A stretch of DNA of 64,000 nt from Ophelia neglecta. Its lineage: Eukaryota. The stretch is taken from the NCBI GenBank assembly GCA_965285935.1, contig OZ260663.1, forward strand, positions 112,778,001 to 112,842,000, given 5' to 3'. The position numbers and the translations under genes are program-made. Below, piece by piece: positions 5,076-56,685 of this stretch. Position 1 is the first letter of the stretch; each line of letters begins with the position of its first letter. The notes under the pieces were generated by a model that did no database searches, was not told the DNA's origin, and saw only the letters and a list, made by a program, of their open reading frames with translations.

Positions 5076-7135
5076 CTAAATGTTCTGATATTCTGCGTGG
5101 CTATCGTGGTAATATATGGCCAACTCGTGTAGATAGCCATATTGGGCCTGTGGAAAGGATAGAAATTAACTCAGCATATATGATCACTAAGTATAATTCT
5201 AGAGAGTAGAGTATTGTTAAAAGCTTGTAAGAAGGACACGATACTTCATTTAAATCATTTTACGAGCTTAAAATTATGACTTTATTTATTATTTTCGTAA
5301 ACCTTACCACTAAGTCAATGAATTGAGACCTATTACTGGCAATGCGCCGCACTGTATTAAATACATTCAGTTCGTGGTCAGCGACCATCTTTTGTATCAG
5401 ATAGGAGGCAGCACAGAACAGACCGCATCTAGTGGCGCCATCTCTATCAAAAAATGTGTAATTGAAGAGGCTATCACAATATAACATAAATATAATTTCA
5501 ATAAAAAAGGGAATGTATATCGGATATTATCAGGATCCACAAGCTGCAGAACGACAAAAAAGGTCACAGGCAGAAATGGCATTGCATTATTGGACATGAT
5601 AGATAGATAGTTTGTCTACTAACAGACACTGAACTACTGTAGTCTTATTGGAGGCCTCCAACCTCCAGGTCTCCACCCGGTCGTACAGATTGACATAGGC
5701 CGCTTTGGTCGGGAGGTCTCTTGACTGAGGCCAGTCAAACATCTCAAACTGTGTGACTATACGAGCCTTTTCTCGGGTCTATAATATATAATATAATGTA
5801 ATAATATAATATTTATTGCCAAAGGTTCACAAAGGATCAAACACAAAGGAATAAACAACTAGATAAAGTAACAAACTAATATGAACATAATAAAACAAGT
5901 CCATATGATATTGAACCCCTGACATTTGGGGCAGAAGCAGAGGTTATTGGCCCCAAATAATGACATGTAATAATTTAGTGCAGAAGGTGCAAAAAAAGGC
6001 TCATAAACAATTATATACTTAGAAAGTACAAATTAATAGTGGGAAAATAAAACATAAATAACAATGTCCCTTTTAGTACATATACAGAAATCAAGCAATC
6101 TGACTACCAGAGTTAAGAAGAAAAAAATTTACACTGTGTTTGAAAGATGGCAGAGAACAATTGAAATAAATCAAAGTATGAAATGAATTGTAAGTTAAGA
6201 CCCCTTGATATTTGACAGTTCTATGAAATTATAGTTAAAAAAAATTACATTATAGTGATTAAGATCAAACTAGATGAGGAGAAACTATTTGCAATTGTGT
6301 TGAAGTAGGATTACATTACTGTTAACTAACCTTTCTGGTGTTGAGTAGTGCGAACTCTCGCGTGGAGACATCCGTCGTGTTGTTCTCCTTGACAAGCGTT
6401 ACCTCAAACGGACCAAACGTCATGTTCGAGTTGACACTTTGTGGCCAATACACTGGGCAGGTCTATTCAATGAAATGGTACAGAACTGTGAGAGATAGTT
6501 GGGCATTACATGCAATGTCATATTATATAGTTATAGGACTTAACCGACCTCGTCCAGAATATCCTCATTTTGAAGCAGCACGATGCATCCACATTCATGG
6601 TCATATATCAGCCTCCAAAAGTCTACGATGGTGTTTGGGAGCGGCATCTGGGTCGCTATCAGACCCTTTTCCATCCTGTAAGTCTATAAAAATACACACA
6701 GATATACATGTGTTGTTATTGTGTTCAGGTTAAAAATAAGACATGTTATAATGGAGGTTAGCAGCACTGGCTGATTGTAAAGCTGTTTTAGAACTTACGT
6801 CTAAGAACACAGCGTTGATGTAGTCATTACCATCGTCAGTTCTGGTAGAGAGAAATGGTCGAGAGCCGCCTAAACAATGGATATTATGTAGTTAGCAGAG
6901 CAGCCCCTCTATATACTGTGTAGGTAAAACGTTGTGTACATAATATAGGGTGCTACATTGAAATTACTGACAAAACTGCATTTTATTAGGTCGAACGTAT
7001 TTGAGTTTCAAAACATAGCGTTAGATTCATTTTAAACATACCCGGCAGTATATCGCTGTCTCTATTCTTCGAGGGGTTTTCGTCGTTCACTGCGGACTCA
7101 TCAGGAGTACATTTACGACACATTTGTCTTAAGAC
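5076..7135 (-). CDS. PTP D2 (pseudophosphatase-type) domain exons and C-terminus
   Basis: KNRDSDILP, DYINAVF, ATQMPLPNTIVDFWRL, CPVYWP, FDWP, VVQCLDGATRCG, QYGYL...EYQNI-stop. Confidence 0.88.
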
Positions 7136-10100
7136 CTGTGGGAGAAAATAAAGCATAACAGTATGAGCTATATGAGTATGTTGAATTTGCTTTTTCCAGC
7201 AAGAAATAAAAGGAACCCCAGATGGTTCTGAGTGTGTAAAAGATCTATTTGAATAGCTGAGTGTGAAAATAGGCAAAGGCCCTTTGAAGATGAAAAAATA
7301 TAAAGGCCCTTCTGAAATAAGACAGTACATTATTTTACATATAAGGGGCCACTGACAACAGTATGAGCTATTTGAATATGTTGAATTTGCTTTCAAAATA
7401 AAGAAGGTAAATTTAACTACCGACGGTACTGAGAACGGGCTACTGACCTGGTATTGTTTCTCCAGAGCAGTTCTGCCCTTTACTTGTTTGGATGTCAGTT
7501 TTTGTAGACATCGCTCATGTTGGAATAAGGGATGAACGGGCCATCGCGGAATCGTGTTGCCTCGACAATAGCTTCGTACACAAACTTGTACTGCTCCTTC
7601 AATCCAGCGCAAATAAATGGACGTTTATTTTTATTTTGCTCATTATCCAGAAGAAAGACATTGGCGAATTTGCTCATAGCATTCAAGCGTACCGTAAGGT
7701 AAGGGAAAGTATATATTTAAAGCTATCTTGAACTGCGGTACTGGTTGGAATTGAACTATCGTTTTGCACACAATGCTAAAGTGTATTGAAATTATAATCA
7801 AATGACCCACTGGAGTTTGGATGACATGGCTCCTTTGCGACCTCATTTTCCTTAACAATGACAGCACGTCTATCTCTCCGTCTGTCGCCGCCTGCTGGAC
7901 CAACTGGTCTATCGCTATGAAAGTCCCGGTTCTTCCTACACCAGCGCTGTGGAAGGAGCAAAAACATTAAGAATTTAACTTTGTGATGAACTTCTCCATT
8001 GACCAATGCCATAACAGATTGCCGTTAAACACTGTTCAGGGTTGTATTGTCTTATTTAGTGTTATATATTGTACCTGCAGTGGACGATGAGCGGACCGCT
8101 GCTGACCATGTCGAAGGATCTGACCTTCCTCCCTGAAGGCGAGCAGAGGGTAGGTCTCGTCTGGAGCCAACTTGTCTGGCCACTTTGAAAACTGAAGGTG
8201 ATGCACGGTTCTGGTTTCTTCCTTATAACGTTTACAAAAACACAGGCAAACGGATTTAGTACAAATATATGCTACTATAGCACATACTAAAACATCGAAC
8301 ATAAATTGGACAAAAATACCTACTCCTTTGATTACCTGCATTATCCTCAAAGCATATTCAGTAAAAACGTCACAACTAACGACTCGAACAGTGAAATGTC
8401 CAAACTTTTTTTCCGCATCATGCACGTCTGACCAGTAATTGCCGCATTTTCTCTACAAATGTATTATACCAATCATCATTATTTTTGTGTTTGGATTCTT
8501 TTCCTGTAAGGTAATGTCGATGAAATGTCCTCATGGACATTAGCTTTCTATTTTTCCTCCATTTTCACCTTTATTCTGACATATTATTATACATTTTTTT
8601 GAAGCTTCTGACATAATCTTCATTTACATTACTCTCTTGGGTAAATGGAAGTTATTATATGGGAAGCTTTATGGTAGCAATATACAATTTGATTAAATAT
8701 ATCTTGCCATGGATGTACATACCACGCCGTTTTCTATTACTTTAGTGAGCATGACAATTCTGTTCGCCTTTAACTGCCACATCATTCTCCAGAAGTCAGT
8801 CAGAGTGTGAGGTGTTGGTGCTGTAGTAAAAGATTTGAAGGCGATAATGCTGAATACATATGAACTTTATTAACATACAGATATCCTACTCAAACACTTG
8901 GCAAACATCGCTAATTCCGTGTAAAGCTTGCAATGAATGTATTGTTTCTTATTTTAGTTGTAGTTGTATCAGTGTTATGGAAGTTATAAGTTGGTAATAG
9001 GCATATAGTTAAATACAAAACCAATGAATTTAATCTTACCTTGAGTGGCTACATATGCTTTATCTGTGTTCCCAGCACCCTGGAATTAAGGGTTGCCGAG
9101 AGTAATACAAGGGAAAAGTTGTAGAACTATCACTGAACTAGTAAAGAAATATCAATCAGGAAGTTTTGTTCGGTTATAAAACAATACTAGATGGGTTACT
9201 GTGAGGAAGTTAGCGTTGATGTAGTCCGTCGTGGATACTGTGGAATCATCTTCAACATCCAATACAACTCTGGTCTTGTCGTCTGGAAGTAAGATGTTAA
9301 TTATGTTGAACATCACCCCATTTCGTCTCAAGCCTTCATTACGGAGAGCTTTCAAACTTTAAATCGACACTCCTTACATGATTTGATATTCTTGAATCTA
9401 TCCTTGTCTTTATTTTCAGCTTTTACTGCTGCTAAACACGGGAAGGGATATTCTACGAGGACGGACTGAAATATAACGACAGTTAGAAAACACGTACTGC
9501 TATCTTATCTAATAGAAAGCTGGATGACAATAATATTTATGATATTACCTCAAATTCCAATTGGAAAAAGTCCATCTTAGACTTTTCCACTACAAATGAT
9601 CTAAGGTCTTTAATCTTTATGGCAGTTGATTTAAATCTAACGACCCCAAAGTTCTGATACATCCGGTCAGATTCCTCATTATCGCCTTGATCTGCTACCT
9701 CAAGCCCAATGTCTCCCAGGTCGTCTTCCTCGGAGTCTTCTGCGGCGTCCGGATTGTCTACATTATCAAAAACGCTCGATTTTGATGAGACAATATTCCC
9801 AACATATAGAATAAACCTATTCATCGTTTATACTTAACATATTCTCACAAAAGACGTGTGTATTTACTACCACCTTACCGTCTGCCGGTCCTACCCGTTC
9901 TTCTCCCGAGCTAGATCGGTTTTTCTTTTCTTTTCGCTTAGAACTGCGTCTGTTGGAAAACATTCACTGATTCTGTTGTAAAGTTATTCTAAGTTGATCA
10001 ATTCATAAAATGACATGCCAGTATTGACAATGAAAAACGTGCACGTTGAGTGCCACTTTATTGAAGGTAACTTCAAAAGCACACGAAGTGTGTATAAAAC

Positions 10101-13100
10101 TTATTGTTGATGATTGTATTACCTAAGAGTTATTAGGACGGCTGCAGTTATCCCGACACCGAGGAGGACAGTAAAGGCGACAGACGGTCCGGCGATGACT
10201 CCGACGTTCATACCTGGAGACGAGGTCGCTTTGACAGTGGAAGAGGAAGTCACTTCTGATATACTCCCTGACGGCCGTGCTGACGTCATTGCTGATGTCA
10301 ATTCTGACGTCATAGTTTATCAAAAGTTTGTTAACACAGAAATGTAGGAATTGAAAGTAGAAGATTACAATAAGAGGGCAGTTCTACTGTCATAATTCAA
10401 ACATGGTAGTGGTTTAAGGCAAACGATTATGTGTAATTCGATTCATGTTTACCTTGTAATGTTGTAACGTTGACCTCAGGGTATTTTCCACTCCCTTCGT
10501 ACACAGTGCCGTCTGTATACACCCTGTACACAGACAAGCCAAACTGGTATCTGGTCCAAGGCTCCAGTCCTACCACTAACACCTGCTGCTCGTCTGTTTT
10601 CCGGTGTGTAACGTTCTGTTCTCGGCTCCACTGGCTGTCATTGACCTTTCTGTAGACTTGGTAGCCAATATACGGAGCCACGTTATCTGAGATGGAGTCT
10701 GAGTAATGCCATTCTAGTATAACCGTGGTCGAGCTGGCTGCTGTTCCCGTCAGTCTAGTAATGGCTGTGTTTAGAACTTTGTCTGAAAGAGGAAGTGAAC
10801 AGGTTTGTATATTACGATTTAGACAAATCACGGCGTTGTAGCCCCTCAAAATGGCTACAAAAATGTCCGGTATTTCTGTGATTTCATGTGGTTAAGAAAG
10901 CCCCTTTTAAGTATGTGCAATTACTCGCTTGTTGCTATTGCACTATGACGCGTACCATCGAAGATAATGAATTTGAGTAAATAGAGATTGGCAATACAAA
11001 AAAAAAGTAACTACAACCTGGGTCCAAATATTACCAAACGAAGACTATCAACTACCCACATAGTCTTTACACGGTGAGGTCAAGTTATATAACGTTGTTC
11101 CTCCTAACTTACTTATTTGGATGTCACACCTGTCTCCCAGCCACCACACGTCTTTCTCGACATCAGTGATGTTTTTACATCCGTCGGTACAGACCCCAGA
11201 CACTCTATTACAAGGCGGGTCATTGTCCGGTTTACAGTGGTCACTACATCTGGCCTCACAACTCTTCCCATACCAACCAGATATGCAAGCTATAACATAT
11301 TTAATAATTTGATGTTATTGACCATATTAATTATTTCAATGTTTTAAAAGTCGTAAGGCGCAATGCCAAATTTCTGCGCCATTAACTATTGGAGATTTAA
11401 TATATAAGAGACCCACATCTTGTACAGTTCGGTAGTCTGGTTCCATTAGGACAACTATTGCAGCCATCGTAGTCGTCGCAGGTGGCCGGGGAAGGACAAT
11501 GGCTGCAATCTGATAAACATACATGAAAATATAATCATTTGGCGGGGGAAGGTTGGGAGTTGGTTATGGCTTGGTGAACCCGATCACGGGTCATTTTTAA
11601 AGTAAAGGCAGGCACTAAATGACTATTATTTAAAATATGGGTTGTCACTCAATACATGAATGAAAAAAAATTCGAATCCCAATAAATTAAAGTAGTAAAT
11701 CCGACTTCACATGAAATCGTACCCTTCGCAGCAAGACTAATTCTTATCGCATAGCTTCTCCGCATCACGCATGCTACAGGCGAAGAGAACGTAGCTGTGT
11801 ACTCTACTACGAAGGGAAATGAAATCGTAAATGTCATAATAAATCATGTCTTAATTTCAATATAGGAACAAGTTCATTCTAGGGTCACGGGAATAGTCTT
11901 AATGTCTCATCCTTAGGGTTTAAAACGTGCCCGATTCCAACGCCTCCACCCCTCCACCTTCTACAGAAAATATTGCCTCCCCTTTTCTCGAAGACAACGT
12001 GGGGATATCCGTTAGGCCTAGAGGGTAATGAGGCAAACCAACCACTCAGCCTACTACGCACTTTTTGTTTGGATGCAACTGGCCAAAAAATTGGATACAC
12101 ACACTATGTAACCGTTAATGATGTGCTTGCAACTAACATTGTTTTTGGATACTTTTTTACCAACCTACTACCATTGGTACTACAGTGACGAAATTTTCAC
12201 AACTATACTCGTGAGCGGGATGGAGCAAAAAGTAGTATAGGTACTGTCAAAAAGTAATATAGGTACTGGCAATTTTTTCCTTCGAGGGATGAAGCGCCTA
12301 TATTTGACTTTGACCTGATTATCTCTAATAAGTAATGAAAATATGTATTTGCATGGAATAATTAGGCATTAATGAAGTCTTGAATTAAAAGGTTGGTTTC
12401 AAATGTCGATAACACTGTTCCAAACCCCAAACCTTGTACTAAGATAAATCTAGGTCGCATTTCTATTACTCACCGACATATGATCTCCCAGTAACTACGA
12501 ACTCACAGATAACCAAGTAGCGAATGTTTTCTGACATTCTCTCGCTAACAAGGGCGACATATCTACCAGTCATAGTAGTTGTACAGTTGAGAGTGAGATT
12601 CCCTCCTCTGGTCACTGGGTCCTTGTGCCGTACACATACCCTACCATTTTTGATATCGGTTGTGTTACCGACAGTTATCCGGAATTTAGACATCCTATCT
12701 ACAAATGTAATGATATTGCATTAAGGTCCCGATTCATGGTCAACATGATTAACCATTTAAAACAATTAAAATGTTGAAATGTATACACATACAAGACACA
12801 TGGTGATCCACATTAAACAAGGTTACACTGTAGATCACGTGGGCAGTTCCCAGGTCGACATACCACCAGGCGGCACTGGGGTCACTGGAAGTTAAGTTAC
12901 CGGCCTGAGCACAATGATATTGGTTTGGGTCAGGATTTATGTCACCATCGACGGCCAAACCAGCTGTTGCTAGCCTGTTCTCCTCATACAGCCAAGCCCC
13001 TTTCTGGTGAGCATGCTGGCGGTAGGCGACGTTACCTGGAATAGTGATACCACAAGTGAGATGTGAAGAGAACCTTTAATGTTAATCACACTCCATACAT

Positions 13101-14531
13101 ACCTGCTTAGTGAGGGCGTAACGTTTCATCAATGTATCGATTAATAGAATCGGGTGGCTTCCAGCTATTCATATGAATAGGAAGATACATTCCCGCTAGT
13201 TTTTAATTAATTCAGATTATCTTTATTTTTCAAACAGAGATCTCTTGTTTCAATAGCTGAAAGCATCATCGCTTGATGCATATCAGCCAATCAATAATGG
13301 TATCAATGTGTTTGTTAAATATGTCAGCCCGTCAATCCCACTTCTTTTTGAACAAATTTCTGTGCGAAATATAAGCCAGTATATATAAAGTCACAGACGA
13401 GTAAACGGCTTGTAAATGTTATATGATGGAGTTTGTTGTCTACCCCAGTTCGGCCATTGATCACGAGAAATTTCATCGGAAATTTGACAAATCCCGTAAA
13501 CCACACAATTCAAGTTTGCGCAATTCCCTTTACCGTAACAGCCCTACTATTTACTAATTTGTAATTACATGTATTATCAACACTGTATAAATACACAGCT
13601 TCACGATCAATAGACTAACATCACAATCTCTTACCAATCCGACATCCATGTCCATGCCATCTGTGTTCTTTGCCACGTGGTTCGCCATCTAAACAAGAAC
13701 CGTTATTAAGACAAGTCCCGTTATCAGAGTCACAGCCATCGGTACATCTACAGGGGAACGACGCGCCCTGGGTGACGTCACCATAACGATCTACAGCTAG
13801 GACAAAAAAAAATATCACGGTATTATAGAACAGCTTGCTGTAGACCTTTACTTTCTTCTCACTTTGTGTTGTTTGAGATAAAACCGTCTATAATCTCACA
13901 ATTAATATGAATAGGTTAAACCTAGACTAGCGAGAGCAGGACATTTTCCTAAATTATTCATGTACCTATCAGAATGACACCCTACATGTAGAAGTACATG
14001 TACGACAAAGTTTTCAGACCATATTGATAGCTAGCATGAAACAATCTTCCAAGTTACCCCATTTTGGAGAAAAATGTCCCCTTGTTAATTGACTCTAGGC
14101 ACACAATATCTATGTTCATAAATTTAGGGAGCGACAATTAAATGATGAGGGGAGGGGGCAGGATTTTTGAAAAAAAAACACCCGGCACAGGTTAAAAAAA
14201 AATTCTGGATCCATATATGATGGACCCGGTTAAGGGTCATACAGAAAAAAATTCTTGGTCCTCCCGACTTAGAAAAAAAATTCTGCCACAGACAAAAATC
14301 CCCCCTCCCCTTGATCACTCTCTTATCAACTTGTACCCAAACAAAACATACCTGCTCAGTTGCAGAAAAAGACACAAACCAAAATGAGGTAAAATGTGGT
14401 AAAACATGAATATTTTTTTTTCTCAACTGTTTTTTTCCCAGTAACCTCTATATTATTCATATATAATTATTATAGCCATAACAAGCAGTCCACTGTAGGT
14501 CATGTGCTCATCTTGTCAACTGTATCTTATG

Positions 14532-17500: not shown

Positions 17501-18780
17501 TACATAGATATCCTGTGCGAATTCAAAGGCGGTCTTACGAAGCGTAAAAACATTTGATTTGGTGGCAAACATGTTTGCAAATACAAAAAAAGAAGATATA
17601 AAACTGTCGTATTATATACAAACATAGAGGCCCAGCATCTAGTTTTGTAGTTTCCGCTTAAGACATGGCTTAAACAATCTCACAGAAAACTGTTAGATAC
17701 CTGGGGGGCAATATTATTAATTAGTGCTCAAATATTACCAAAAGCAGTTCAGCCGGATAAAAATGTGCTGTCCGAAATTCCTCCCAGTGTGGATATTGGG
17801 AAGATAACAGCTTTATCTGCAACACAATCTGATCTAATTCTGCGAACACCGCTCTCTTGTCGGGTAGCCTTAATACGACTAATTGTCTTTCTTGGGCGGG
17901 CTGTTTCAGAGGACAAGTAACGAGATTATTAGACAGGATATGGTGGCTGTCATACACGAGATGGCGGCTGACACAGACCATATAACCGCTGTCTAACACC
18001 ATATGGCACCTATCAGTCACCCGACGGTCCATATCAGACACCAGATGGCAGCTATACAAACATAGCGGCCCAGCATGGAGTTTTGTAGTTTCCGCTCAAG
18101 ACATGGCTTAGACAATCTCATGTAAAACTGCTAGATACCTGGGGTGCAATATATTTAGTGCTCATATATTATCACAAGTAATTCAGCAGGATAGAAATGT
18201 GCTCTCAGAATTCCACCCCGGTGTGGATATTGAGAAGAAACTGTTTTATCTGCAATACAATTTGATCTAGGGCTTCGAACAGGGCTCTCTTGTCGAGTTA
18301 GACTTTTTACTACTAACTGTCTTTCTTCAGCGGGCTGTTGTAATGAAACGAGAGTACTGTTGTAGAGGTTAAATAACGACATTATTAGACATAATATGGC
18401 GGCTGTCATACACGAGATGGCCGCTGACAGATACCATATAACCCCTGTCTAATACCGTATGGCACCTAACAGATACCCGACGGTCCCTAGCAGGCACCAG
18501 ATGGCAGGTACAATACACCATATCTTATGGATGCTGACATACATGGGTTAGCGTCTACATAGTGAGGGTGTGATATGTCAATTATGATTGAACACCCTTC
18601 AGTGAAACAGATTACACAGGACTGAATAGACTACACAGAGGGGCCCCGAGACAGCACATGTTTATGATATGTCAAATTAAAATGTAAGGAGAAACTATTC
18701 AACACATTACCCATCACAGCTCTGAGAACGCAGGATATCACCAGAATACTATACACAGCTATCGTGAACAGCGTAGCCAT
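5076..18780 (-). CDS. Receptor-type protein tyrosine phosphatase with signal peptide, EGF-like/Cys-rich modules, F-type lectin domain, FN3, TM and tandem PTP D1-D2 (25 exons, about 1139 aa)
   Basis: GT-AG exons with consistent phases: 18711-18780, 13635-13790, 12793-13035, 12474-12698, 11417-11509, 11113-11289, 10453-10782, 10123-10303, 9879-9949, 9549-9757, 9378-9465, 9200-9282, 9040-9079, 8723-8820, 8324-8452, 8075-8221, 7811-7946, 7448-7596, 7042-7135, 6799-6869, 6549-6683, 6331-6462, 5624-5778, 5308-5443, 5076-5147 (sum 3420 nt). Motifs DYINA, ATQ, DFWRM, WPD, HCSAGVGRTG (in the shifted frame), QTPEQY and D2 VQCLDGATRCG. The acceptors at 9757 and 10303 are less certain. Confidence 0.88.
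7448..9465 (-). CDS. PTP D1 domain exons (catalytic segment out of frame between about 8132 and about 7500)
   Basis: KDRFKNI, DYINANF, YVATQAP, DFWRMMWQ, KCGNYW and WPD in frame. VHCSAGVGRTG and QTPEQY are present only in the neighbouring frame. Confidence 0.85.
10453..10782 (-). CDS. Fibronectin type III exon of the RPTP
   Basis: SSTTVILEW...IGYQVYRK...VVGLEPWTRYQFGLSVY; 330-nt phase 1-1 exon. Confidence 0.88.
12474..13035 (-). CDS. F-type lectin (fucolectin/F5-8C-like) domain exons of the RPTP
   Basis: NVA..AHQ...AVDG...HCAQ...WWYVDLG..VIYSV.LFN...GRYV...LVICEFVV pattern. Confidence 0.82.
14531..14600. repeat. (CA)n(TA)n microsatellite
   Basis: Read directly from the sequence. Confidence 0.9.
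15000..16080 (-). pseudogene. Decayed OTU-like cysteine protease ORF, probably from a Helitron/Helentron or LINE
   Basis: VPRDGNCLFHALS (about 16005-16045), YIDTM...ND*G..EI*VA and IQLLLANQHFHVL (about 15655-15695), then a K/E/T-rich linker. Intronless, with stops and frameshifts. Confidence 0.65.
16985..17190. repeat. Degenerate 21-bp-period array (cagacaccagatgg family)
   Basis: Same unit family as 500-630, 17930-18060 and 18390-18520. Confidence 0.55.
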
Positions 18781-34549: not shown

Positions 34550-37500
34550 TATCAACGTCAAGTACCCTGCTTGGTAGCAGTACCTATTGTAGTCGGTAAA
34601 ATGTGACGGATGACGCGTTGATTGTCTAGTTGATTTTTATCTCGTGAATAGCTTGTTGTTGACGACAGCTATGCCTCCGACTTCTTTACCCACGTCTTGG
34701 ATAACATATGTATTGCGAGGCGGCAATTAAGTAACACCACTTTTATGATTATATATCACTGTTTTCATTCGGTTAACACGGATCCAGATAATCTGAGAAA
34801 TACCTAACCTTTCGCTTTTGATGACGTCCGCTTTTCGACTTTGATCTGATACATGTATTTATTCTGTATTTATAAGTTCAACTAATTATCATATTGTTTT
34901 GTAAATAATTGTATTAATGATGTTTATTTTTTAACTGTACACTTTGTTATTGGAATTAGCAACTCCATGAAAAGGAGAAAATAAAAAATTTATACATATA
35001 TATTTGTAGTAAAATCAATCATGGTACAAGCTTAGAACAATTTTTTATGGCGTCTATTAAAATCTATAATACTAAATACGATAAATGGGAAATTGATCGC
35101 GGAACTATATAAAGACGCATGATTCTAACAATTCAATGTTAATTGTCATTGTCTATGAACAATGTATACATGAAAATATAAAACAAACAAGCAATAGGTA
35201 AAATTAGTGAGAAAGTCCTAATAAATGTGAAGAGTGTTTCGATGCACGAGTAGAAAAATAAACTCGTAACATTAACTATCTATCCATATAATGAAAGCCG
35301 AAAACTATTAACGCATAGAAAATTACCTATTAGTTCGTGGACATACATATATTATTTATCATCAAAGGCATCTGGGGTAAATACATGTAGGTGTAAAATA
35401 GATGCTTTTTAGCCCAATAACAAATCAGCTTGTTATTTTTACAATGCAGGCGTGATGATCAAAGTGCATGAATATAGGCCCAGTTTATAATATTTTAGTT
35501 ATGACCGAAAATAAGCACCTACATACTAACTGATTAAACTAGCATTAAGCTTCTACGTCAATAAAAGATTTTTCCCACAGAAAAGAGTTAGTAAAGTTTT
35601 AAAACAACTCTTCAAGATAGATAATTTATAACAGTAAGGGCGATAGTACCATTGACTGCTATTACGCGGCAGTCTGTTATGATACAAATGTCAAATATGT
35701 GAAAGTTTGTTTTTTGAATTGGGTCTTTATCCGTTGTTACCCCCCAATGTTTTCATAATCGTCTGGTCCCGTGGACTGCAGATACGGCGTGGGTCGTGGA
35801 GGACAGAGGTCCATTGGTAGATTCAGTTCACCTGAAACACAAATCTTGAATAATGGCAGGTTGGGACTGATAGCCCCGAATTGTTTGCTTTACAAATAAA
35901 AACACTTATTTAGATTATACGCGAGTGGATTTTAATTACAGTGCATTAACTAGAATGAAGAGCGTAAAAATATAATACTATATTCAGCGCCAGTAGTGGG
36001 TCCATGGTTTACTGAGGAGCGGCCGAGATCTAATGTCTCATACGATGTCTGAACGGTTTGTTGGCCGGTTGCCTCCATTCCAGTTGTCGGCTTCAAATCA
36101 TTTCTCTTGTTCCTTAAATTGAATAATTTTGATATTAAAAACTATACTTACCATAAAACGATATTGACGTGTACAATTTTTCTGTTAGTTTGTGGAACAT
36201 CTCTTCCTTATCAATATAACTGATAAAACCAGGACAATGGCGAGTGTGATAGCGTTTGCTCCAGCCAGTCCCGCTATCAACCCGGTGTTTAAGGCACTGC
36301 CTTGGCAAACACCAGATTGCCCAGGTCCCTCGAATGGCGATGTCGTCATCGTAGTTGAAGGAGGCGAGGTTTTAGAAGATGGCTTTGGAGCTACAGGAAA
36401 ATACATGTTGAATTCAGGATACAAAGTCTTTTCTAAGTAAAGGTTCTTATATGGAAATCACTAACGCTGCCTAGCGGCGTTTAACTGGGTGAAGTAGGAG
36501 ACAGAATTATAGTATAGGACAGAACTAGTTGGGAGAGGTTACTTGGGCCTGACTCTGAAGCAGAGAGAGAGTAGCGAGGAGCCAATGGACGATGGGGATT
36601 AAGACTAGATAACACGCTTCTTTTAACCTGTTATCACGTTGGTTGACCTCAGGGTATTTTCCACTCCTCTCGTACACCGTGCCGTCTGTATACACCCTGT
36701 ACACAGACAAGCCAAACTGGTACCTAATCTCAGGCTCCAGTCCTACCACTAACACCTGCAGTTGGTCTGACCTATGGTGTGTAACGTTCTGTTCTCGGCT
36801 CCACTGGCTGCCATTTCCCTTTCTGTAGACTTGGTAGCCAATAAACGGAGCCGCGTTATCTGAGATGGAGTCTGAGTAATTCCATTCTAGTATAACCGTG
36901 GTCGAGCTGGCAGCTGTTCCCGTCAGTCTAGTAATGGCTGTGTTTAACACGTGGCCTGAAGGATGAAGTGGGTATGATTGTAGTTTACAATTTACTTAAA
37001 TCACGGCGTTGTGGCCGCTGGAAATGGGTAAACCGATGTAAAGCCGATTTTTGTGAGTTTACGTGGCTAAGAAAGCATTTTTAAAGTATGTGTTATAACT
37101 CAAGGATTGCTGGGTCACTATGACGCGTACCATTCAAGATAATAATATTGAGTAATTAGACATTGGCAATATACCCAAGTAACGACAGCCTAGTCGAAAT
37201 ACTGCCATACAAAGACTACTAGCTACTCACATCGTCGTTACACGGTGAGGTCAGGTTATATAACCTTGTCTTCTTACTTACCTATTTTGATGTCACACCT
37301 GTGTCCAAGCCACCACACGTCGTTGTCAATATTAATGACTTCTTTACATCCGTCGGTACAGACTCCAGACACTTTATTACAAGGCCGGTCACTGTCCGGT
37401 TTACAGTGGTCAGTGCATCTGGCCTCACAACTGTTTCCATACCAACCAGATATACAAGCTATAACAAATTTACTAATATGATGTCATTGAACATATTATT

Positions 37501-39084
37501 AATATAAATGTTTTTAACACTTGTAAGGTGCAATGCCAAATTTCTGCGCCATTAACTATTGGAGATTTGATAAAAGAAAGACCCACATCTTGTACAGTTC
37601 GGTAGTCTGGTTCCATTAGGACAACTACTGCAGCCATCTTAGTCGTCGCAGGTGGCCGGGGGAGGACAATGGCTGCAATCTGATATACATACGTGAAAAC
37701 ACATTTATTCGGCCGCGGAATGTTGGGGGTTAGGTATGGCCTGTTGAACCCGGCCACGGGTCAATTTTAACGTAAAGTTTGCAGCCAAAACGATATTATT
37801 TAAAATATGGGTTGTCACTCAATAATGAACGACCGAATTATATAATCACAATCAAATAAAGTAGTAATTCCCACTTCACATGACAACGTAACAGTTATAA
37901 TAAATCAAGTCTTTTAGGACCGATGAAAAGTCTTAAAGTCTGATCCTTAGGGTTGAAAACGTGTCCAATTCCAACGGCTTCACCCTCCACTATCTACAGA
38001 AAGTATCACCTCCCCTTTTCTCGAAGCCAACTTGGGCGGATATCCATTAGGCCTAGAGAGCAATGAGCAAGCCAACCACTCAGCCTACTACGCCGAGCAC
38101 TTTTGGTTTGGATGCAACAACCAAACACTTGTATCCACACACTGTTTAGTCGTTAATCATGTGATTGGAACTGGCTATGTTTGTGGGATACTATTTAACG
38201 AACCTACAGCCATAAGTACTGGAGTGACGAAATGTTCATAAATGTACCTGTAAGCGCGATGTAGCATAAATAGTACAAATAAAACGCCAAAATTGACAGT
38301 GATGAATGAAGCGCCCATATTAATCCCTCTATTGTGAAATCTGCAAAATATGTAATTAGATGGCTACAGGGATGAAAAATGACTGCCGGGAAAGTGGTGG
38401 TGGGGGGAGGGGGGTTGGTTTGGTCGTCTGTGTGTGTTAAAAGTTTACGGTCGTTGTATTTCTTTTACTAATTATCGTGTAAGGAAATCATAAGGCATTT
38501 AAATACTGGTCTCAAAAGTCGATAGATCTGTTCTAAACCCCAACCTTGTACACACATATTTCAAAATAATGAAGCCTAGGTCGCATTTCTATCAATCACC
38601 GACATATGATCTCCCAGTAACTACGAACTCACAGATTGTCACGTAGCGAATGTCTTCTGACGGAGACGTTCTCTCGCTAACATAGGCGACATATCTACCA
38701 GTCATTATAGTTGTACAATTGAGAGTGAGATGCCCTCACCTTGTCACTGGGCCCTGGTGCCGTACACATTCCATACCATTTCTGATATCGGTTGTGTTAC
38801 CGACAGTTATCCGGAATTCAGACATCCTAACTACAAATGTAATGATATTGCATTAAGATCCCAATTCATGGCCAACATGATTAACCATTTAAAAAATTAA
38901 AATGTTTAAATATATACACATACCATACACATCGTGATCCACATTAAACAAGGTTACACTATAGATCACGTGGTCAGTTCCCAGGTCGACATACCACCAG
39001 GCGGCACTGGGGTCACTGGAGGATTGGTTACCGGTATAAGCACAATGATATTGAAATTGGTCAGGGTTTGTGTCACCGTCGACA
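34550..39084. repeat. Segmental duplication of about 48425-52360
   Basis: Colinear exons, introns and about 1.1 kb of 3' flank. Confidence 0.85.
35737..39084 (-). pseudogene. Receptor paralog 2 (F-lectin, Cys-rich, FN3, TM, short Tyr-motif tail), 5'-truncated
   Basis: Exons 38924-39084 (cut by a LINE), 38600-38830 (TGA at 38736-38738), 37587-37679, 37282-37458, 36628-36955 (frameshift), 36207-36390 (donor GT>GA), 35979-36112, 35737-35831. Confidence 0.85.
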
Positions 39085-39568
39085 ACAACACCTTAAATTT
39101 TTATAAAGTTTACAAGCCCAATTTTTTGACCATTTAATAGAAGGTCATTAACAGACAGTGTCCCAGATCTTTTATTTCTGAAGACCATAAAATTTGTTTT
39201 CGAGACATTTAGTGTAAGTTTATTTGAATGGAACCAGGAGATTAGCTTTGGCATTTCGGTATTGAATAAATTAATCAAGTTATTCACAGAGCGGCCTGTA
39301 ATCAGAAAGTTGGAATCATCGGCAAATAAGCGTGTAAAAAGAGTTTGAGATACGTTTGCCATATCATTAATGTATAGTAGAAAGAGAAGTGGCCCCAGGA
39401 TCAATCCCTGAGGAACACCACATGAGATTGGGGAGTACTGAGAATAGGTATTTTCAAAATCAACAAATTGGCTTTGATTTGTCAGATAAGAATTCAGCCA
39501 ATCAAAGGCAATGCCCCGCACTCCACAACACTCAAGTTTAGACAGGAGGATACCGTGGTTCACTGTGT
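39085..39568 (-). mobile_element. CR1-like LINE RT fragment interrupting paralog 2
   Basis: NHGILLSKL, GVPQGLILGPLLFLLYIND, LFADD. Confidence 0.88.
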
Positions 39569-40039
39569 CGAAGGCCCAGGGCTGGGTTGCTGAGCTTTCT
39601 TTTTGTTTGGGGGAAATTTAGATTTTGTTGTACAATATGACCGACCACACGTGGAAACACTACAGTTCTATAGCATGTCCACTCCCGGCGGCGTATTGTT
39701 ATCGACTGACCGTGGTCCTGGCCAGCCACACCGCGCCGCCTTGTTCACCCAGCCGTGATGGTTCCTCATTGGATACAAGAGGGAATCCCCTCGCTCACAC
39801 ATTATGAAATCCCACTAAGCTAATGATATACAAATGAGCGTATAAAGTTCGGGGCATGGAACTAAAGGACTGCCTCTTTGCCTTGTACAGTGCGATGCAT
39901 AGACATTGAAAGGTGCACGATTGGCTCAAAGCTGGAGTTGTGATAATTGTTTACATAGGCTCCGTAAAATACTCTGATGATCGCACGACCTATAGAGGCT
40001 TCACCCCACACCCCGATCTATAAACACTGGCAGCGCTTT

Positions 40040-47661: not shown

Positions 47662-47751
47662 GGTATACCTGAAGAATAATAATGAACTTACGATGAGAGC
47701 GTAGCAGTGCGGCTTTTCGCTTGGTATGGCGTTGAAAGGACTGAAATGGTC

Positions 47752-47772
47752 AGCTGACGTCCTATATATAGG
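47752..47772 (-). promoter_or_regulatory. Putative promoter in repeat A: palindromic TATA (CCTATATATAGG) beside overlapping E-box/CRE-like CAGCTGACGT
   Basis: Motifs read directly, about 100 bp upstream of the SGNH ATG; also present in A2 (41872-41892). Function is inferred. Confidence 0.45.
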
Positions 47773-47875
47773 TGTCTGGTGACCAAGAACAATGCCAGAC
47801 TTATTCGGTTCTTGGAGAAGTCGTTCCAATTGCCATCACGCAAACCTAGTTTTTCACATGTTACAAAACTTACAT

Positions 47876-49524: not shown

Positions 49525-52500
49525 TTATCCGTTGTTACCCGGAATGTTTTCATAAGCGACTGGTCCGGTGGACTGCAGATGCGGCGTGGGTCGTGGAGGA
49601 CAGTGCTCCATTGGTAGATTCAGTTCACCTAAAACACAAATCTTGAATAATGGCAGGATGGGACTGATAGCCGCGAATTGTTTGCTTAACATGAACAAAC
49701 ACTAATTTAGATTACACGCGAGTGGGTTTTAATTACAGCCCCATTAAACAGATAGAACAGCGTAAATATATAATACTATATTCAGCGCCAGTAGTGGGTC
49801 CATGGATTACTGAGGAGAGACCTAGATCTAATGCCTCATACGATGGCTGAACGGTTCGTTGGTTGCTAGACTGTAGTCCAGTGGTCGGCTTCAAATCATT
49901 TCTCCTGTACCTTAAATTGAACAATTTTGATATTAAAAACTATACTTACCATTAAACGATATTGACATTTTCAATTTTTCTGTTAGTTTGTGGAATATCT
50001 CTCTACCTTATCACTATAACTGATAAAACCAGAACAATAGCCAGTGTGATAGCGTTTGCTCCAGCCAGTCCCGCTATCAACCCGGTGTTTAAGGCACTTC
50101 CTTGGCAAACACCACATGGCCCAGGTACCTCGAATGGCGATGTCGTCATCGTAGTTGAAGGGAACGATGTTTTAGGAAATGTTTTTCCAGCTAGAAGAAA
50201 ATACATAAATTATTCAGGACAAACAAGTCTTTCCTTATATGTAATTCACTGATATCTCGCCTATCGGCGTTTCACTTGGTTTAGCATGAAATATTATTAG
50301 TTGCGAGATGGTAATTAGCCCAGACTCTGAGGGGGAGAGAGTAGCGAGGACCCAAGGGAGCATTGGGATTTAGACAAGATTATTCGCTTATTTTTAACCT
50401 GATGATGTTATCACGTTGACCTCAGGGTATTTTCCGCTCCCCTCGTACACCGTGCCATCTGTATACACCCTGTACACAGACACGCCAAACTGGTATCTGG
50501 TCTCAGGCTCCAGTCCTACCACTAACACCTGATGCTTGTCTGTTGTCTGGTGTGTAATGTTCTGCTCTCGGCTCCACTGGTTGTCATTGACCTTTCTGTA
50601 GACTTGGTAGCCAATATACGGAGCCACGTTATCTGAGATGGAGTCTGAGTAATGCCATTCTAGTATAACCGTGGTCGAGCTGGCTGCTGTTCCCGTCACA
50701 CTAGTAATGGCTGTGTTAAGAACTTTATCTGAAAGAGGAAAAGAACATATGTTTGTATTTTACGATTTAGATAAATTACGGCTTTTTCGCCCCTTAAAAT
50801 GGATACAAACATTTCCGGTATTTCTGTGATTTCATGTGGTTAAGAAAGCCCACTTTTAACTATGTGTTCGAGGTCACGTTATATAACGTGCTTCCTCCTA
50901 ACTTACCTATTTGGATGTCACACCTGTCTCCCAGCCACCAAACGTCCTTGTGAACATTAGTGATTTCTTTACATCCGTCGGTACAGACCCCAGACACTCT
51001 ATTACAAGGCGAGTCACTGTCCGGTTTACAATGATCACTGCATCTGGCTTCACAACTCTTCCCATATCAACCAGATGTACAAGCTATAACATATTGACTA
51101 ATTTGATGTTATTGAATATATTATTAATATAAATGATTTTAAAACGTGTAAGGTGTCTTGACAAATTTCTGTCCTATTAACTATTGGAGATTTGATATAA
51201 GAGAGACCCACATCTTGTACAGTTCGGTAGTCTGGTTCCATTAGGACAACTACTGCAGCCATCGTAGTCGTCGCAGGTGGCCGGGGGAGGACAATAGCTG
51301 CAATCTAATAAACATACATGAAAATACATTAATTTGGAGGCAGAATGTTGGTATTGTGGGATGCCCGAGAGGGCAATGACGCAAGCCAGCCGCTCAACCT
51401 ACCATGCCAACAGGAAATGTTCACAACTTTACCAGTTAGCGCTACGGAGCAAATCGTATTATAGTAACTGGCAGAACGTTTTAAAGATAATGGCATCTTC
51501 TTTCTTTCGAGAAATGAAGCGCCCATATTTGACTATGAACTGATTATCTCTAATAACAATTCTAAACAAATGTATCTACATGTCAATAGGAATGAAAAAT
51601 GACCGCCGTGGGCGGGGGGGGGGGGGGGGGGGGTTCGAGTGTACGTGTTAAACTTTTAATTCTGTTGTATTTCTGGCTTTTCAAGTGAATTTGGAAAAGA
51701 ATAAAAATGCTCCTTTATTAACCTGGAATTTTTGTTATTTATTATCGTGTCAGGAAATCATTAGGCATAAATGAAGTCTTAAATTAAAGGCTGGTCTCAA
51801 AATTCTATAACACTGTTCAAAAACCCCCAACCTTGTACTAAAATAAACCAGTAATGAAGCCTAGGTTGCTTTCTATTACTCACCGACATATAATCTCCCA
51901 GTAACTACGAACTCACAGATAGACAAGTAGCGGATTTGATCTGGCGGAGACGTTCTCTCGCTAACATAGGCGACATATCTACCAGTCATAGTAGTTGTAC
52001 AGTTGAGAGTGAGATTCCCACCTCTGGCTACTGGGTCATGTTGCTTTACACATTCCTTACCATTTTTGATATCGGTAGTGTTACTGACAGTTATCCGAAA
52101 CTTAGACATCCTAACTACAAATGTAATAATATTGCATTGAGATCCCGATTCAAGGCCACATGAATAGCCATTAAAAAAGTTGAAATGTTGAAATATATTT
52201 ACATACCAAACACTACGTGATCCACATTAAACAGGGTTACACTGTAGATCACGTGGGCAGTTCCCAGGTCCACATACCACCAGGCGGCGCTGGGGTCACT
52301 GGAGGATAGGTTACCGGGATGAGCACAATGATTTAGGTCAGGATTTGTGTCACCGTCGACAGCCAAACCAGCTGTTGCCGGTCTACTCCCACGTAATAGC
52401 CAAGTCCCTTTCTGGTAGGCATTCTGACGGAAGGCGACGTTACCTGGAATAGTGATTCCACAAGTGAGATGAGAAAAGAAGCTTTTTATATTAATCACAC

Positions 52501-55500
52501 ACCATACATACCTGATTAGTTAGGGCTTTTCGTTTCATCAATGTATCGATTAATCGAATCGCTTGGCTTCCAGCTATTTATATGAATACGATAAGCTATA
52601 TTTCCGATAGTTTGTAAGTAATACATAGCCTCTTTGTTATGCAAACCTAGATATCTGGGTTCAATAGCTGAAAGCGTCACCACTTGATGCATATCAGCTA
52701 ATCAACAATGGTATCTGTTTGTTTGTTAAACTACTTAGCCCGTCAATCTAACCTTTTATTTAAAGAATTTTCTGTCTGAAAAATACATAGCCTCTTTGAT
52801 ATGCAAACCCAGATCTCTTGGTTCAATAGCTGAAAGCGTCACCACTTGATGCATATCAGCTAATCAACAATGGTATCTGTGTGTTTGTTAAACTACTTAG
52901 CCCGTCAATCCAACCTTTTATTTAAAGAATTTTCTGTCTGAAAAATCTCTGAATATCAGTCAGTATATATAAAGCCACAGACAAGAGAACGGCTAGTAAA
53001 TGTAATTTGATGGAAATTGCTGTCTACCCCGGATTGGCCATTGATCACGAACTGATCAGAAGTCAAATCCCGTGCACCACACAATTCATGTATCCTCTAT
53101 TGCCTTTACCGTAACAGCCCTACTGTTTATTTAATTTGTAATTACATGTATTAGCTACATTGTATAAATACAGAGCTTTACGACCAGACGGCTCACATCA
53201 CAATCTCTTACCAATCCGACATCCATGTCCGTGCCATCTGTGTTCTTTGCCACGGGGTTCGCCATCTAAACAAGAACCGTTATTAAGACATGTCCCGTTA
53301 TCAGGGTCACAGCCGTCGGAACATCTACAGGAGAACGCCGCGCCCTGGGTGACGTCACCATAGCGATCTACAGCTAGGACAAAAATAATATCTTGGTATG
53401 ATACTCTATATTATGGCCACCCTAGAGCATATTTCTTCTCTGTCCTACGTTATATTTATGTTAACCCCCCCCCCCCCTCCTCAAAGACACCCCCAATCCC
53501 AAACATAACCATCCTAGCCAGCCCCTACAGTCAGGTTTTCTTTCCCCTCAGAGACGCAACAACGAAATTATTAACATTAGTCTGTCACTGCAAGGCACAA
53601 GATAATATAATCTCCAGCACGAGGCTGGCGAGACTACTAGCGAGAGTGTCATTTGACCTTATGATTAAGCAACTTACAGCAGAACATGCGGAGTGTAAAT
53701 AAATCCGAGGCTCAGAATGTCGCATCTTAATATGTTAATATAAATATATTACCAATCGCGTCCCTGGAATCGGAGCAAACAAGTTCAGACTGAAAACGAA
53801 AATAAAAACAAGAAGCAAGTACCCAATCAAATAACTAAGCTTACAAAGCTGGTCCGTCCTTAATCTTGTCTTGACAATAAATAACTTTAACAAGGGTGCG
53901 CTGTGGTTGCCGAAATTCGTCATCAATGCCTTAAACTACCTCCCACAAGAAGAGTTCTGATCAAGGCTAACTTCAAAATAAACAGGGCAAGGATGCACAG
54001 AACACCCTGCACCATACTGCTATTAATGATTAGCCAGCACTATTAACCCTTGCTGAATTAAATATGCCAGTAATGCAGAAATCATTTTATACAATATAAT
54101 AAAATAATAAACGGTATTATGTATGTAAAATATAATAAATTCTGACTCTCACTGTTGCCGTGAAAAATTGGCAGTAACAGCCACGTTATGATGTTTCCTA
54201 CTCTTAAGAACAACACTGCTGCATGGCTTCATGCACTGATCTGCAACGCATTTATAGGCCTACAGGTTTTTTCGAAAAATATACATATAATTTGTATATA
54301 TTTATGTGTAGGTGTGTGGCAAAAGACGATGCCTCTATTAATTTATTATATTTATCCCAGTACTAAGAACATTCGGGAGCAGCAGTGTCTTTATCAAGGC
54401 CAGTCTGTTTTTTCATTACCTTCGTACATCAGATGAAGATCAGTGCAAATATCATATTAGGTACTTGCAGTAACAGGTCCTTATTTACAGGTATTGGGAA
54501 GGAATGTGTGGATCATGTGGCCCAAATACAGGTTACGACCTAGTCGATCTATTTACTGCTCTTACTATCCACACCCTCTTGACGGTAGGGACAGTCAGTA
54601 GTTATTTTAACCAGTCCAACGTTATTTATATTTTAAGAGAATGTTTATTATTTAAGGATCGCCTGAATGACTGATGTTATATTCCCCAGCTACTGTATGG
54701 TAAACACTCAAGTTAACTGAACCATACCATCCCTGGCCTGACGTTAATAAGACGCCTTCCCCTGTTATCTGTTTACTTTTACTGTAAATCAGAACTGCTG
54801 CGCGTGTAGAGAAATGTCCTTCACGACATTTTACTTCTAAAACACATTTTCCAGTTGTTCAAATGTAATTGGTTTACAGTATATTTTAGGGCAATCGTCA
54901 CGCATCTCCCATTCTATTACGTTAATGTACATAAAATAAGAACACGTCAATTCAAGTATGTTTATCTTAGCTCCACCTCCAGGTTAGATTTTCTAAAGTC
55001 GCATTTCTCAATGTGTAGTCGTCACTTTCATTGGTTGGATATTTATAACCAAAAATTAGGAATATAAAGTGTCACTGATGCAAAAATATTTGAACACAAG
55101 AGTCAGATCAACTGTATGGAAATGACCTACATATTATGATGACGATTAGACATGTACGTATCGCCTGACATTATAAGGTGCATATGATGTATTATTATTC
55201 AACTGACAAAATAGAATACACACATTGCATATATACGTCAGTACCAGCTGTCAGATCATTTATATATATTGACAGCTCCTCCCGGATGATGTTGCCATAA
55301 CGGTTTACAGCTAAGGCCAGTACGTATTATATACTGGACAAACAAGTCAAATAATAACTAAAATCCTTAAGTCTGCAGTACCTCTTGAATAGTTTAAGTC
55401 AGAGAACAATATATCAAGACAATCATCTCTCACTTCCCTTCAGAGATCTTAAACAACAGTTATATATTTCTTGAGACAGTGTCTTCTCAAGACCGTGATG

Positions 55501-56685
55501 CACAGTTTATTGACTTAACTAAAGATTGTCAATCCTTATCATGAATTTAGTTGACAATTAATACTAGTGTTCCCCGATTATTGAGGTGCTAAATATGGGC
55601 GAACTCCTAAGATCAATATCTATAATAAGATGTTAGATTTCAAGTTTGGTTCCACCCCTCTTGTGTGTGTTGAAATGAATGTTTTAGCAGTAAAGTAAAG
55701 AAGAGTACACAATCTATCGGGGCCATTTCTAGTGAGTACATATTCCTCCTATCTGCCTTTATTTAGCCGTTCTATGGGTACAAGCCATCTCAACATACAA
55801 GTTTATTGACAGCCGACTGTCAGCCCGGGCCACACACCAAGTTTTTGTACACTTTGTTGATCACAGGTTATAAGTCAACCCCCAATTTAGGTAAGTACCT
55901 TTACGAATTTAAAGGCGGTCTTAAGAAACTTTAAATCCTTTGGCTTGTTGGTAAATTACAATATTTAAAACTCCCGTATAATATACAAACATACCGGCCC
56001 AGTTTACCAGTCATTGGTTTTAAAGGTAAACGGAATATACATATTATTAATCGAGATTGGAATTTCCGCTTCAAACTAATCTTAAACAATCTAACGAGAC
56101 GCTGCTAGTTACCGGGCCCTTATCATTAGTGTTTAAACATTTCAACAGGCAATTCAGTAACATAGACATTTCAGGATGTCATCTTAGGTGGACAGCACGA
56201 ATCTAAGTGCATCCAATTATCAGCATCAGACAGGCATGTGAATACTGGGGATATAAAAGCCAGGTAAATCAACAGCACAACGGCCCTCTTGTCGGGTAGC
56301 CTTAAAACTAACTGTCTTCCTGTTGTAGAGGTCAAGAAACGAGATTATTAGACACCAGATGGCGGCTGTCTGACACCATATGACACCTTACAGACACCCG
56401 ACGGCCCCTAACAGGCCCCAGATGGCAGATACAATACACCATACCATATGGATGCTAACACACATGGGTTAGTGTGTACATAGTGAGGGAGTGATATGTC
56501 CATTATGATTAAACACCCTACAGCCGAAATCTCACAGATTATCTAGGGCGCCCGAGACAGGACATGTTCAGGATATGTTAAACTAAATGTAAAAAGAAAC
56601 TATTCAACACATTACCCATCACAGCTGTGAGAACGCAGGATATCACCAGAATACTATACACAGCTACCGTGAATAGCGTAGCCAT
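49525..56685 (-). pseudogene. Receptor paralog 3: SP, EGF-like, F-lectin, Cys-rich x2, FN3, TM, short Tyr-motif tail; one nonsense codon
   Basis: Exons 56616-56685, 53212-53367, 52207-52443, 51884-52114, 51212-51304, 50907-51083 (TGG>TGA at 51067-51069), 50399-50728, 50007-50190, 49777-49910, 49525-49628. All splice sites and phases intact. Confidence 0.85.
52621..52945. repeat. Tandem duplication of about 162 bp in an intron
   Basis: atacatagcctctttg... at 52621 and about 52783. Confidence 0.8.

Follow-up and report, generated by a model that had tools for sequence, protein, structure and literature searches.

We describe a predicted family of receptors in Ophelia neglecta in which a common extracellular cassette leads into either of two cytoplasmic ends. 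The analysed stretch of DNA (hereafter the window; 64,000 nucleotides, G000:C5:112778001-112842000, i.e., contig OZ260663.1) carries three related gene copies, all on the minus strand, whose shared ectodomain exons lead either into tandem protein tyrosine phosphatase (PTP) domains, as in copy 1 (P type), or into a short tail with tyrosine motifs, as in copies 2 and 3 (T type). A preliminary description of this stretch had treated it as a cluster of three genes; instead, the window closes, on the right-hand side, a tandem array of 2.2 Mb (C5 110.59-112.83 Mb) with ~84 genes, 38 of the P type and 46 of the T type according to an exon-by-exon search of the species' own genome. The central proposal of that description, one ectodomain coupled to two kinds of cytoplasmic end, is upheld by a cassette of seven exons common to P and T genes. 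As far as sequence can tell, the array constitutes a lineage-specific family of single-pass receptors.

The window displays ~41% G+C, is eukaryotic DNA, and gave no match in an Rfam search. Self-comparison delimited three related segments (~10.4-13.8 kb, 34.6-39.1 kb and 48.6-53.4 kb) plus repeated promoter and exon-1 regions, a likeness among the predicted copies that is far beyond chance; the span treated here runs from the ATG of copy 3 (56685) to the last base of the copy 1 stop codon (5076). A three-way alignment together with splice-site reading provided the gene plan, namely a signal peptide (E1), a Cys-rich EGF-like exon (E2), a lectin-like domain split by an intron (E3 and E4), two Cys-rich exons (E5 and E6) and a fibronectin type III domain (FN3, E7), where E1 ends in phase 1 and E2 to E7 are all phase 1-1. 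Between copies, DNA identity over these common exons ranges from 79 to 91% (self-BLAST). The three copies stand as first described, although the exons they share are similar rather than near-identical. The described divergence after FN3 was also recovered, as a break 9-17 bp into the following intron; for copies 1 and 3, homology ends 17 bp past the exon (10436 and 50382 vs exon ends at 10453 and 50399). Beyond this point copy 1 has its own transmembrane (TM) exon, termed TM', and Pfam Y_phosphatase matches for both domains D1 and D2, and copies 2 and 3 have the other TM exon (E8) and a tail of about 80 residues (E9 and E10) with the motifs YETL/YEAL, YSEL and YENI (exon positions in Table 1). 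YSEL is formed across a splice junction, with its Ser codon split A/GT between E9 and E10. The copy 3 TM and tail exons read R-YRRNDLKPTTGLQSSNQRTVQPSYEALDLGLSSVIHGPTTGAEY / S / ELNLPMEHCPPRPTPHLQSTGPVAYENIPGNNG-stop (slashes mark exon junctions around the split codon), including PSYEALDL, GAEY / S / ELNLP and VAYENIPGNNG-stop, and the copy 2 tail retains TSYETLDL, AEY/S/ELNL and DDYENIGG-stop. No homology between the TM exons of the two types was detectable, BLASTP giving only an 8-residue match (E 0.03). Protein, Pfam and PDB searches were run exon by exon, and the T-type TM and tail exons matched no Pfam family at E 1.

The two types are almost confined to the array and interleave along it. 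The T-type TM exon gave 46 cluster matches (C5:110.60-112.83 Mb) of 48 in the genome, the tail exon E9 47 of 49, and all 38 genome matches of the P-type TM' exon fall inside the cluster, where 38 copies of the D1 exon are also present. By position, the types follow the order PTPTPTPPTPTT..., with 62 runs vs 42.6 +/- 4.5 expected, an alternation reached in 1 of 100,000 shuffles, although block duplication of P-T units would yield the same pattern. For the lectin exon, 150 matches were scored out of 370 first-look candidates, ~88 of them in the cluster and more distant ones elsewhere on C5 and on C2, C7, C16 and C77. Among the 80 full-length cluster matches, 40 sit 1.5-4.5 kb upstream of a T-type TM exon, 35 upstream of a P-type TM' exon, and 5 upstream of neither.

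Conservation of the tail exons was assessed in 41 T copies of the array with available sequence. Splice sites are kept almost throughout: the acceptor AG is present in 38/39 copies for E7, 38/41 for E8, 41/41 for E9 and 40/40 for E10, and the donor GT in 39/39, 40/41 and 40/41 for E7, E8 and E9, respectively. Motif 1 (YxxL) occurs in 40/41 copies, as TSYETL in 21 and PSYETL in 13; the Tyr closing E9, which belongs to motif 2, in 39/41, followed by an E10 start of the form ELxL(P/S) in 39/40; and Y-x-N-[IVL] ahead of the first stop in 34/40, as DDYENI in 19. Twenty-five of the 41 copies are free of lesions in E7-E10, at least 14 of which are also clean in E5-E6 where data existed. In clean copies, the Y, E, L, D and L of YETLDL, the E and both L of ELxL, and the Y, N and I of YENI are 100% conserved, a PPRP stretch is 91-100% conserved, and 26 of 30 TM positions are 95-100% conserved. 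Divergence per site amounts to 0.09-0.11 in E7-E9 vs 0.16-0.30 in the flanking introns, and dN/dS was 0.24 for the TM half of E8, 0.84 for its stalk half, 0.46 for E7, 0.76 for E9 and 0.59 for E10. Furthermore, a T gene with all ten exons intact was identified (locus L073, with exon 1 ~8 kb left of the window), which keeps PSYETL, AEY/S/ELNL and AAYENI. The expectation that the Tyr motifs would be conserved in intact copies is thus borne out, both by this gene and by the invariant tyrosines of the clean copies.

Exchange of heads between the types was addressed with a maximum likelihood tree of contiguous genomic DNA from E5 to E7, comprising 9 P and 25 T copies, all those with sequence available for both exons. 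The tree is not sorted by type: it displays 7 type changes, at least 5 of them forced by well-supported branches, and shuffled labels average 8.1. Mean distances were 0.137 between P and T copies, 0.126 among P copies and 0.134 among T copies. One P/T pair located 1.5 Mb apart is 96.1% identical over 1278 bp, the match ending 9 bp past E7; in a second pair it ends 13 bp past E7 and in copies 1 and 3 at 17 bp, so that the same boundary is found in 3/3 pairs. A similar mixture is observed in the lectin exon, where the closest relatives of copy 1 are, in order, P, P, T, P, T, T, P, T..., and P heads are not closer to copy 1 than T heads (medians 73% and 76%). The intermixed types and the fixed boundary indicate that ectodomain segments have been repeatedly exchanged between the two chassis, or the tails swapped, in agreement with the module swapping for which an ectodomain tree had been proposed as a check. 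Neighbour-wise homogenisation of P and T heads was rejected as an explanation, as the T head nearest to that of a P gene is not its neighbour's.

The preliminary description had also assigned signalling identities to the tail motifs. The consensus of the immunoreceptor tyrosine-based inhibitory motif (ITIM) requires S, I, V or L at position -2, which is occupied by Thr or Pro in motif 1, Ala in motif 2 and mostly Asp in motif 3. VAYENI does fit an ITIM-like consensus in copy 3, as proposed, but not as a conserved feature, since Val at -2 of motif 3 is found in 3/34 motif-keeping copies, copy 3 among them. YETL is separated from YSEL by 16 residues and YSEL from YENI by 22, spacings too long for an immunoreceptor tyrosine-based activation motif (ITAM; YxxL/I, 6-12 residues, YxxL/I). 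Both ITIM and ITAM were therefore ruled out as conserved tail features on the -2 residues and motif spacings. The T-type TM segment, GLIAGLAGANAITLAIVLVLSVI, contains no charged residue. What is conserved in the tail are two YxxL sites preceded by acidic residues, the PPRP stretch and, close to the C-terminus, a YxN. The proposed Grb2-type SH2 site at YxN fared better: Y and N are 100% conserved in 24 clean T copies and the P-type end EYQNI is kept in 38/39, docking itself being predicted. This shared C-terminal YxN suggests that one adaptor may serve both arms.

On the P side, hallmarks of classical receptor PTPs (RPTPs) are present at the family level: the C(X)5R loop, the WPD loop, the Q-loop and tandem D1-D2 domains after the TM segment. 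D1 displays the WPD loop, a ...GPLIVHC/SAGVGRTG signature spanning an exon junction and the Q-loop, and D2 carries WPQ and QC-L-DGATR. The closest PDB chains for two D1 exons belong to RPTP epsilon and alpha, followed by sigma and LAR, a placement that, made from single exons, is tentative at the subfamily level. The C-terminus of the P genes, EYQNI-stop, was traced as a 24-mer that is exact in 26 and one base off in 13 cluster copies (39 sites, C5 110.59-112.78 Mb); its Tyr is kept in 38/39, and one copy ends in YENI. The HAEYQNI-stop end of the P genes (copy 1: 5076-5099, minus strand) resembles the DDYENI end of the T genes and the C-terminal Tyr of RPTP alpha.

The head of both types appears F-lectin-like in fold, with sugar binding putative. 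Among solved F-type lectins, E3 matched FBP32 (3cqo) at E 1.2e-5 and eel agglutinin (1k12) at a weaker E of 0.004. With the exons searched singly, E3 and E4 match successive halves of the galactose-binding-like family PF22633, namely positions 2-41 of 91 (E 2.7e-5) and 47-90 of 91 (E 0.058), both below the cut-off; their junction reads NVDHxV(S/F/Y)-x-RMSKFR. The position near the sugar-binding His of F-type lectins holds Q, Y or H according to the copy (CAQAG, CAYTG or CAHPG). E3 is the most variable ectodomain exon: in cluster members its protein sequence is 63-100% identical to that of copy 1, and its dN/dS is 0.84 (n=4 copies).

The features of the window are collected in Table 1. In addition, E1 and E2 of copy 2 were looked for and not found, nor were E5 and E6 of the next T copy left of the window; the copy 3 counterpart of E2 gave a weak Pfam EGF match (E 0.0038, below the cut-off), and E5/E6 of copy 1 matched no Pfam family at E 0.01.

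Table 1. Predicted exons and associated features of the receptor copies, in window coordinates.
Feature	Position	Strand	Details
Next T copy, just left of window: upstream and exon-1-like repeat	1..831	-	E7-E10 at C5:112775.7-112776.9 kb, E10 with stop
Copy 1 PTP D2 exons	5076..7150	-	Resolved: 5778-5624 (WPQ instead of WPD, ...VVQC), 5443-5308 ((L)DGATRCG), last 5147-5076 (...HAEYQNI-stop)
Copy 1 juxtamembrane and PTP D1 exons	7448..9963	-	Pfam Y_phosphatase; resolved: 8221-8075 (WPD loop, ...GPLIVHC), 7946-7811 (SAGVGRTG...QTP), 7596-7448; first exon borders approximate
Copy 1 Ser/Thr-rich stalk and TM' exon	10123..10303	-	Phase 1 to 2
Copy 1 E7, FN3, last exon common with T type	10453..10782	-	Pfam fn3 E 5.6e-7, 30.1 bits, above cut-off
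Copy 1 E5 and E6, Cys-rich	11113..11509	-	E5 11509-11417, E6 11289-11113; phase 1-1
Copy 1 E3 and E4, F-type-lectin-like head	12474..13035	-	E3 13035-12793, E4 12698-12474; phase-1 intron between
Copy 1 E2, Cys-rich EGF-like	13635..13796	-	Phase 1-1
Copy 1 E1	18711..18780	-	ATG 18780; signal peptide MATLFTIAVYSILVISCVLRAVM; donor GTAATG, phase 1; homologous to copy 3 E1
Copy 2, 3' exons	35727..36955	-	E7 36955-36628 (328 nt, with a rearranged end), TM exon 36390-36207 (without its donor GT), E9 36112-35979, E10 35831-35727
Copy 2 pseudogene	35727..39092	-	E3 remnant 39092-38924 (5' part replaced), E4 38830-38600 (TGA stop), E5 37679-37587 (TAA stop), E6 37458-37282
Reverse-transcriptase fragment abutting and truncating copy 2 lectin exon	39096..39617	-	Pfam RVT_1 E 3.2e-18
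Copy 3 TM and tail exons	49525..50190	-	E8 50190-50007 (phase 1 to 2), E9 49910-49777 (phase 2 to 1, donor GTATTA), E10 49628-49525 to stop
Copy 3 ectodomain exons	50399..53373	-	E2 53373-53212, E3 52443-52207 (6-nt in-frame deletion), E4 52114-51884, E5 51304-51212, E6 51083-50907, E7 50728-50399
Copy 3 E1	56616..56685	-	ATG 56685
Orphan promoter and exon-1 duplicate upstream of copy 3, no gene body behind	57407..58541	-	ATG 58318; same signal peptide and donor, both intact

All three window copies carry disabling lesions. In addition to the truncated copy 2, copy 1 has gained one base near 8133 and lost one near 7503/7504 when compared with its paralogues (7/7), both changes lying within its D1 exons at 7448-8221 (minus strand), and therefore its D1 catalytic core is read in another frame in this assembly. 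The shifted frame between these indels contains no stop; over the active-site exon it is open in all 38 paralogues, so that this openness is not special to copy 1. The sole lesion of copy 3 is a TGG to TGA nonsense change in E6 (51069-51067), at a Trp codon kept in the other 36 of 37 E6 copies; DNA contigs from three sequencing runs of one sample, probably the same as that used for the assembly, displayed no alternative letter at this site; these contigs extend through the introns of copy 3 and contain no splice joints. A 162-bp tandem duplication (96% identical) lies in the E2-E3 intron of copy 3 (52620-52946). Across the array, 16/41 T copies are visibly broken in E7-E10 and retroelements cut copies, in keeping with the birth-and-death evolution suggested earlier.

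Other repeated sequences were found in and around these genes. A BEL/Pao-type long terminal repeat (LTR) retrotransposon occupies 20978-27668 (minus strand; LTRs 20978-21231 and 27415-27668, 98.4% identical), with open reading frames (ORFs) for a Pao peptidase, an integrase zinc-binding domain, DUF5641 and DUF1759. A further element (41112-47875) displays 251-bp direct repeats (41112-41362 and 41992-42242, 99.6% identical), a reverse-transcriptase ORF, a GDSL/SGNH-like ORF (47059-47829) and a 42/82-bp tandem repeat (46443-46678). Just past the last array gene, a 64-bp satellite (62290-64000) of ~27 copies with 94% matches continues beyond the window's right end. Elsewhere in the array, C5 111.135-111.170 Mb and 112.041-112.076 Mb contain near-identical P and T genes in mirror order on opposite strands, with coordinate sums constant within 20 bp; this pair reflects either the inverted duplication of a segment within the array or a duplicate introduced by the assembly.

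Relatives of the family were sought in databases and in the literature. Against 1.84 billion representative proteins, the FN3 exon retrieved generic FN3 proteins (25-51% identity, 5 matches at or below 1e-10) and no close relative, with no match at or below 1e-30; tblastn of these generic FN3 proteins on copy 1 gave no useful guide. A lectin-headed family of RPTP and tail receptors was not found described in the literature covered, outside of which lie many subscription journals and supplements.

Among known systems, the closest parallel is offered by vertebrate paired immune receptors such as KIR, Siglec-5/14, PILR and SIRP (review PMC3533184). Like them, the array genes display very similar ectodomains on different signalling ends, clustering, birth-and-death and ectodomain exchange between kinds. 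Unlike them, the P arm of the array, if inhibitory, has a built-in phosphatase in place of an ITIM recruiting one; the T arm carries tyrosines in a tail of its own, where the vertebrate receptors use a charged TM residue together with an ITAM adaptor; and the array comprises ~84 genes with lectin-like, EGF-like and FN3 heads, those of vertebrates being Ig or C-type lectin. Opposing outputs, part of the vertebrate definition, would be no more than a possibility for the array. With RPTP epsilon/alpha (2jjd, 6uzt) and sigma/LAR (3sr9, 1lar), the P type shares the VHC/SAGVGRTG signature, WPD loop and Q-loop of D1 and a degenerate D2 (WPQ), whereas its lectin-like head and 38 tandem copies set it apart from classical RPTPs. 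The C-terminal Tyr of the P type stands in a YxN context, as does Y789 of RPTP alpha. Once phosphorylated, Y789 acts as a recruitment site for Grb2 and Src, and RPTP alpha removes the phosphate from Y527, an inhibitory residue of Src (PMC7959691).

With F-type lectins (1k12, 3cqo), E3 aligns from the N-terminus to the ...WW.VDL...V.I.N strand; in contrast to these, the array head is predicted to be membrane-anchored and multi-domain, the His position is Q, Y or H, the first Arg is Val, and E4 lacks a match. Among invertebrates, the snail PTC1 and PTC2 clusters consist of hyperdiverse genes for single-pass transmembrane proteins, to which a role in recognition is attributed (PMC7494358), resembling the array as clusters of divergent single-pass membrane genes. 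As a lead they were set aside: in the main text of that article phosphatase, lectin, fibronectin and tyrosine have 0 mentions, and no shared architecture is documented there. Tyrosine-motif tails are also found in the large, polymorphic receptor arrays that a colonial chordate uses for allorecognition (PMC12582321).

Taken together, we consider it reasonably probable that shared-head P and T receptors take part in one phosphotyrosine signalling scheme. The variable lectin-like head would bind a ligand, causing the receptors to cluster, and a Src-type kinase would phosphorylate the T tail, which could then dock SH2 and SH3 proteins, namely a Grb2-type adaptor at pYxN and further proteins at PPRP and both YxxL sites. 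The same ligand would attract a P receptor whose head is identical or similar, and there this receptor may erase the T-tail phosphates as an antagonist. Alternatively, like RPTP alpha, it may prime Src-family kinases and dock an adaptor at its own C-terminal YxN, acting as a co-activator. We give opposition and co-operation about equal weight, the latter being as plausible as the former because of the likeness to RPTP alpha/epsilon and the conserved C-terminal YxN. The three genes of the window probably take no part in the scheme any more.

Several observations weigh against this scheme. The T tails contain no canonical ITIM or ITAM and all three of their motifs also fit the YxxPhi sorting signal; dN/dS of the tail exons is just mildly below 1 (0.59-0.76), and splicing of E7 to the tail is predicted from conserved splice sites and phases. 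As the closest T head of a P gene is not its neighbour's, a strict one-to-one pairing is not shown. Regarding the head, E4 retrieved no PDB chain, whether searched by itself or as a profile of five copies. The fucose-binding motif of F-type lectins is H-x24-R-x-D-x4-R/K; its residues are not kept, and the first Arg is replaced by Val in all six copies read. Moreover, ~40% of the T copies are damaged, including both in the window, as is the window's P copy, and recent segmental duplication, or duplication in the assembly, may account for some of the near-identical copies. Finally, the lack of a close relative among the 1.84 billion proteins leaves the family without an annotated or transcript-derived model behind it.

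Some of these points would be expected if the T genes encoded endocytic or scavenger lectin receptors, with no signalling link to the P genes and the head alone shared. Many vertebrate endocytic lectin receptors use YxxPhi-type tails, and the fit of YETL, YSEL and YENI to this clathrin-adaptor sorting signal, like the missing ITIM and ITAM, would follow. Sorting does not need, however, the Asn at +2 of YENI, the Asp-Leu after YETL or the acidic residues before each Tyr, which are invariant in clean copies; the P genes end in the same Y-x-N-I, and the two types alternate along the array, all of which makes an endocytic role quite improbable. A more radical alternative is that the T class as a whole is a decaying by-product: non-functional sequence would have taken the place of the 3' part in P genes, and the resulting genes would have multiplied together with the array. 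The damage in E7-E10 of 16/41 T copies and the two broken T copies of the window agree with it; nevertheless, splice sites and phases kept in 38-41 of 41 copies, the TM dN/dS of 0.24, exons ~1.7 times less diverged than introns, the invariant tyrosines of clean copies and the intact gene at L073 render it highly implausible.

A different objection concerns what the head recognises. Instead of sensing glycans in immunity, the family might function in adhesion between cells, in gamete recognition or in allorecognition, with the head binding a protein or self ligand and the P/T duality tuning adhesion signalling as in classical RPTPs. We regard this as unlikely, the best matches of E3 being solved F-type lectins, even though canonical fucose-binding residues are missing from the head, no other part of the receptor varies as much (63-100% identity to copy 1; E3 dN/dS 0.84, n=4), and the PTP domains of the P genes resemble the alpha/epsilon and LAR/sigma types, which are active in adhesion; allorecognition by tyrosine-tail receptor arrays in a colonial chordate (PMC12582321) is likewise in its favour.

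Beyond the shared phosphotyrosine scheme, a wider and more tentative possibility, which we rate as doubtful, is that the array constitutes a germline-diversified recognition system. The start of intron 7, as a fixed exchange point, would put any head on either chassis, so that each specificity would exist in a "signal" form and in an "eraser or primer" form meeting on the same ligand and setting the response threshold; the array would then be an invertebrate counterpart of paired receptors, with the enzyme built in, and would be used in immune recognition or in allorecognition. The tuning of immune recognition by paired receptors is regarded as a vertebrate feature. If the proposal is true, the array would represent an independent and mechanistically different solution, in which the phosphatase is built in and not recruited. 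The window itself is mainly of value as a clearly resolved case of decay at the array's edge, and the array as a whole as a natural experiment on how ectodomain cassettes stay matched between two signalling chassis.

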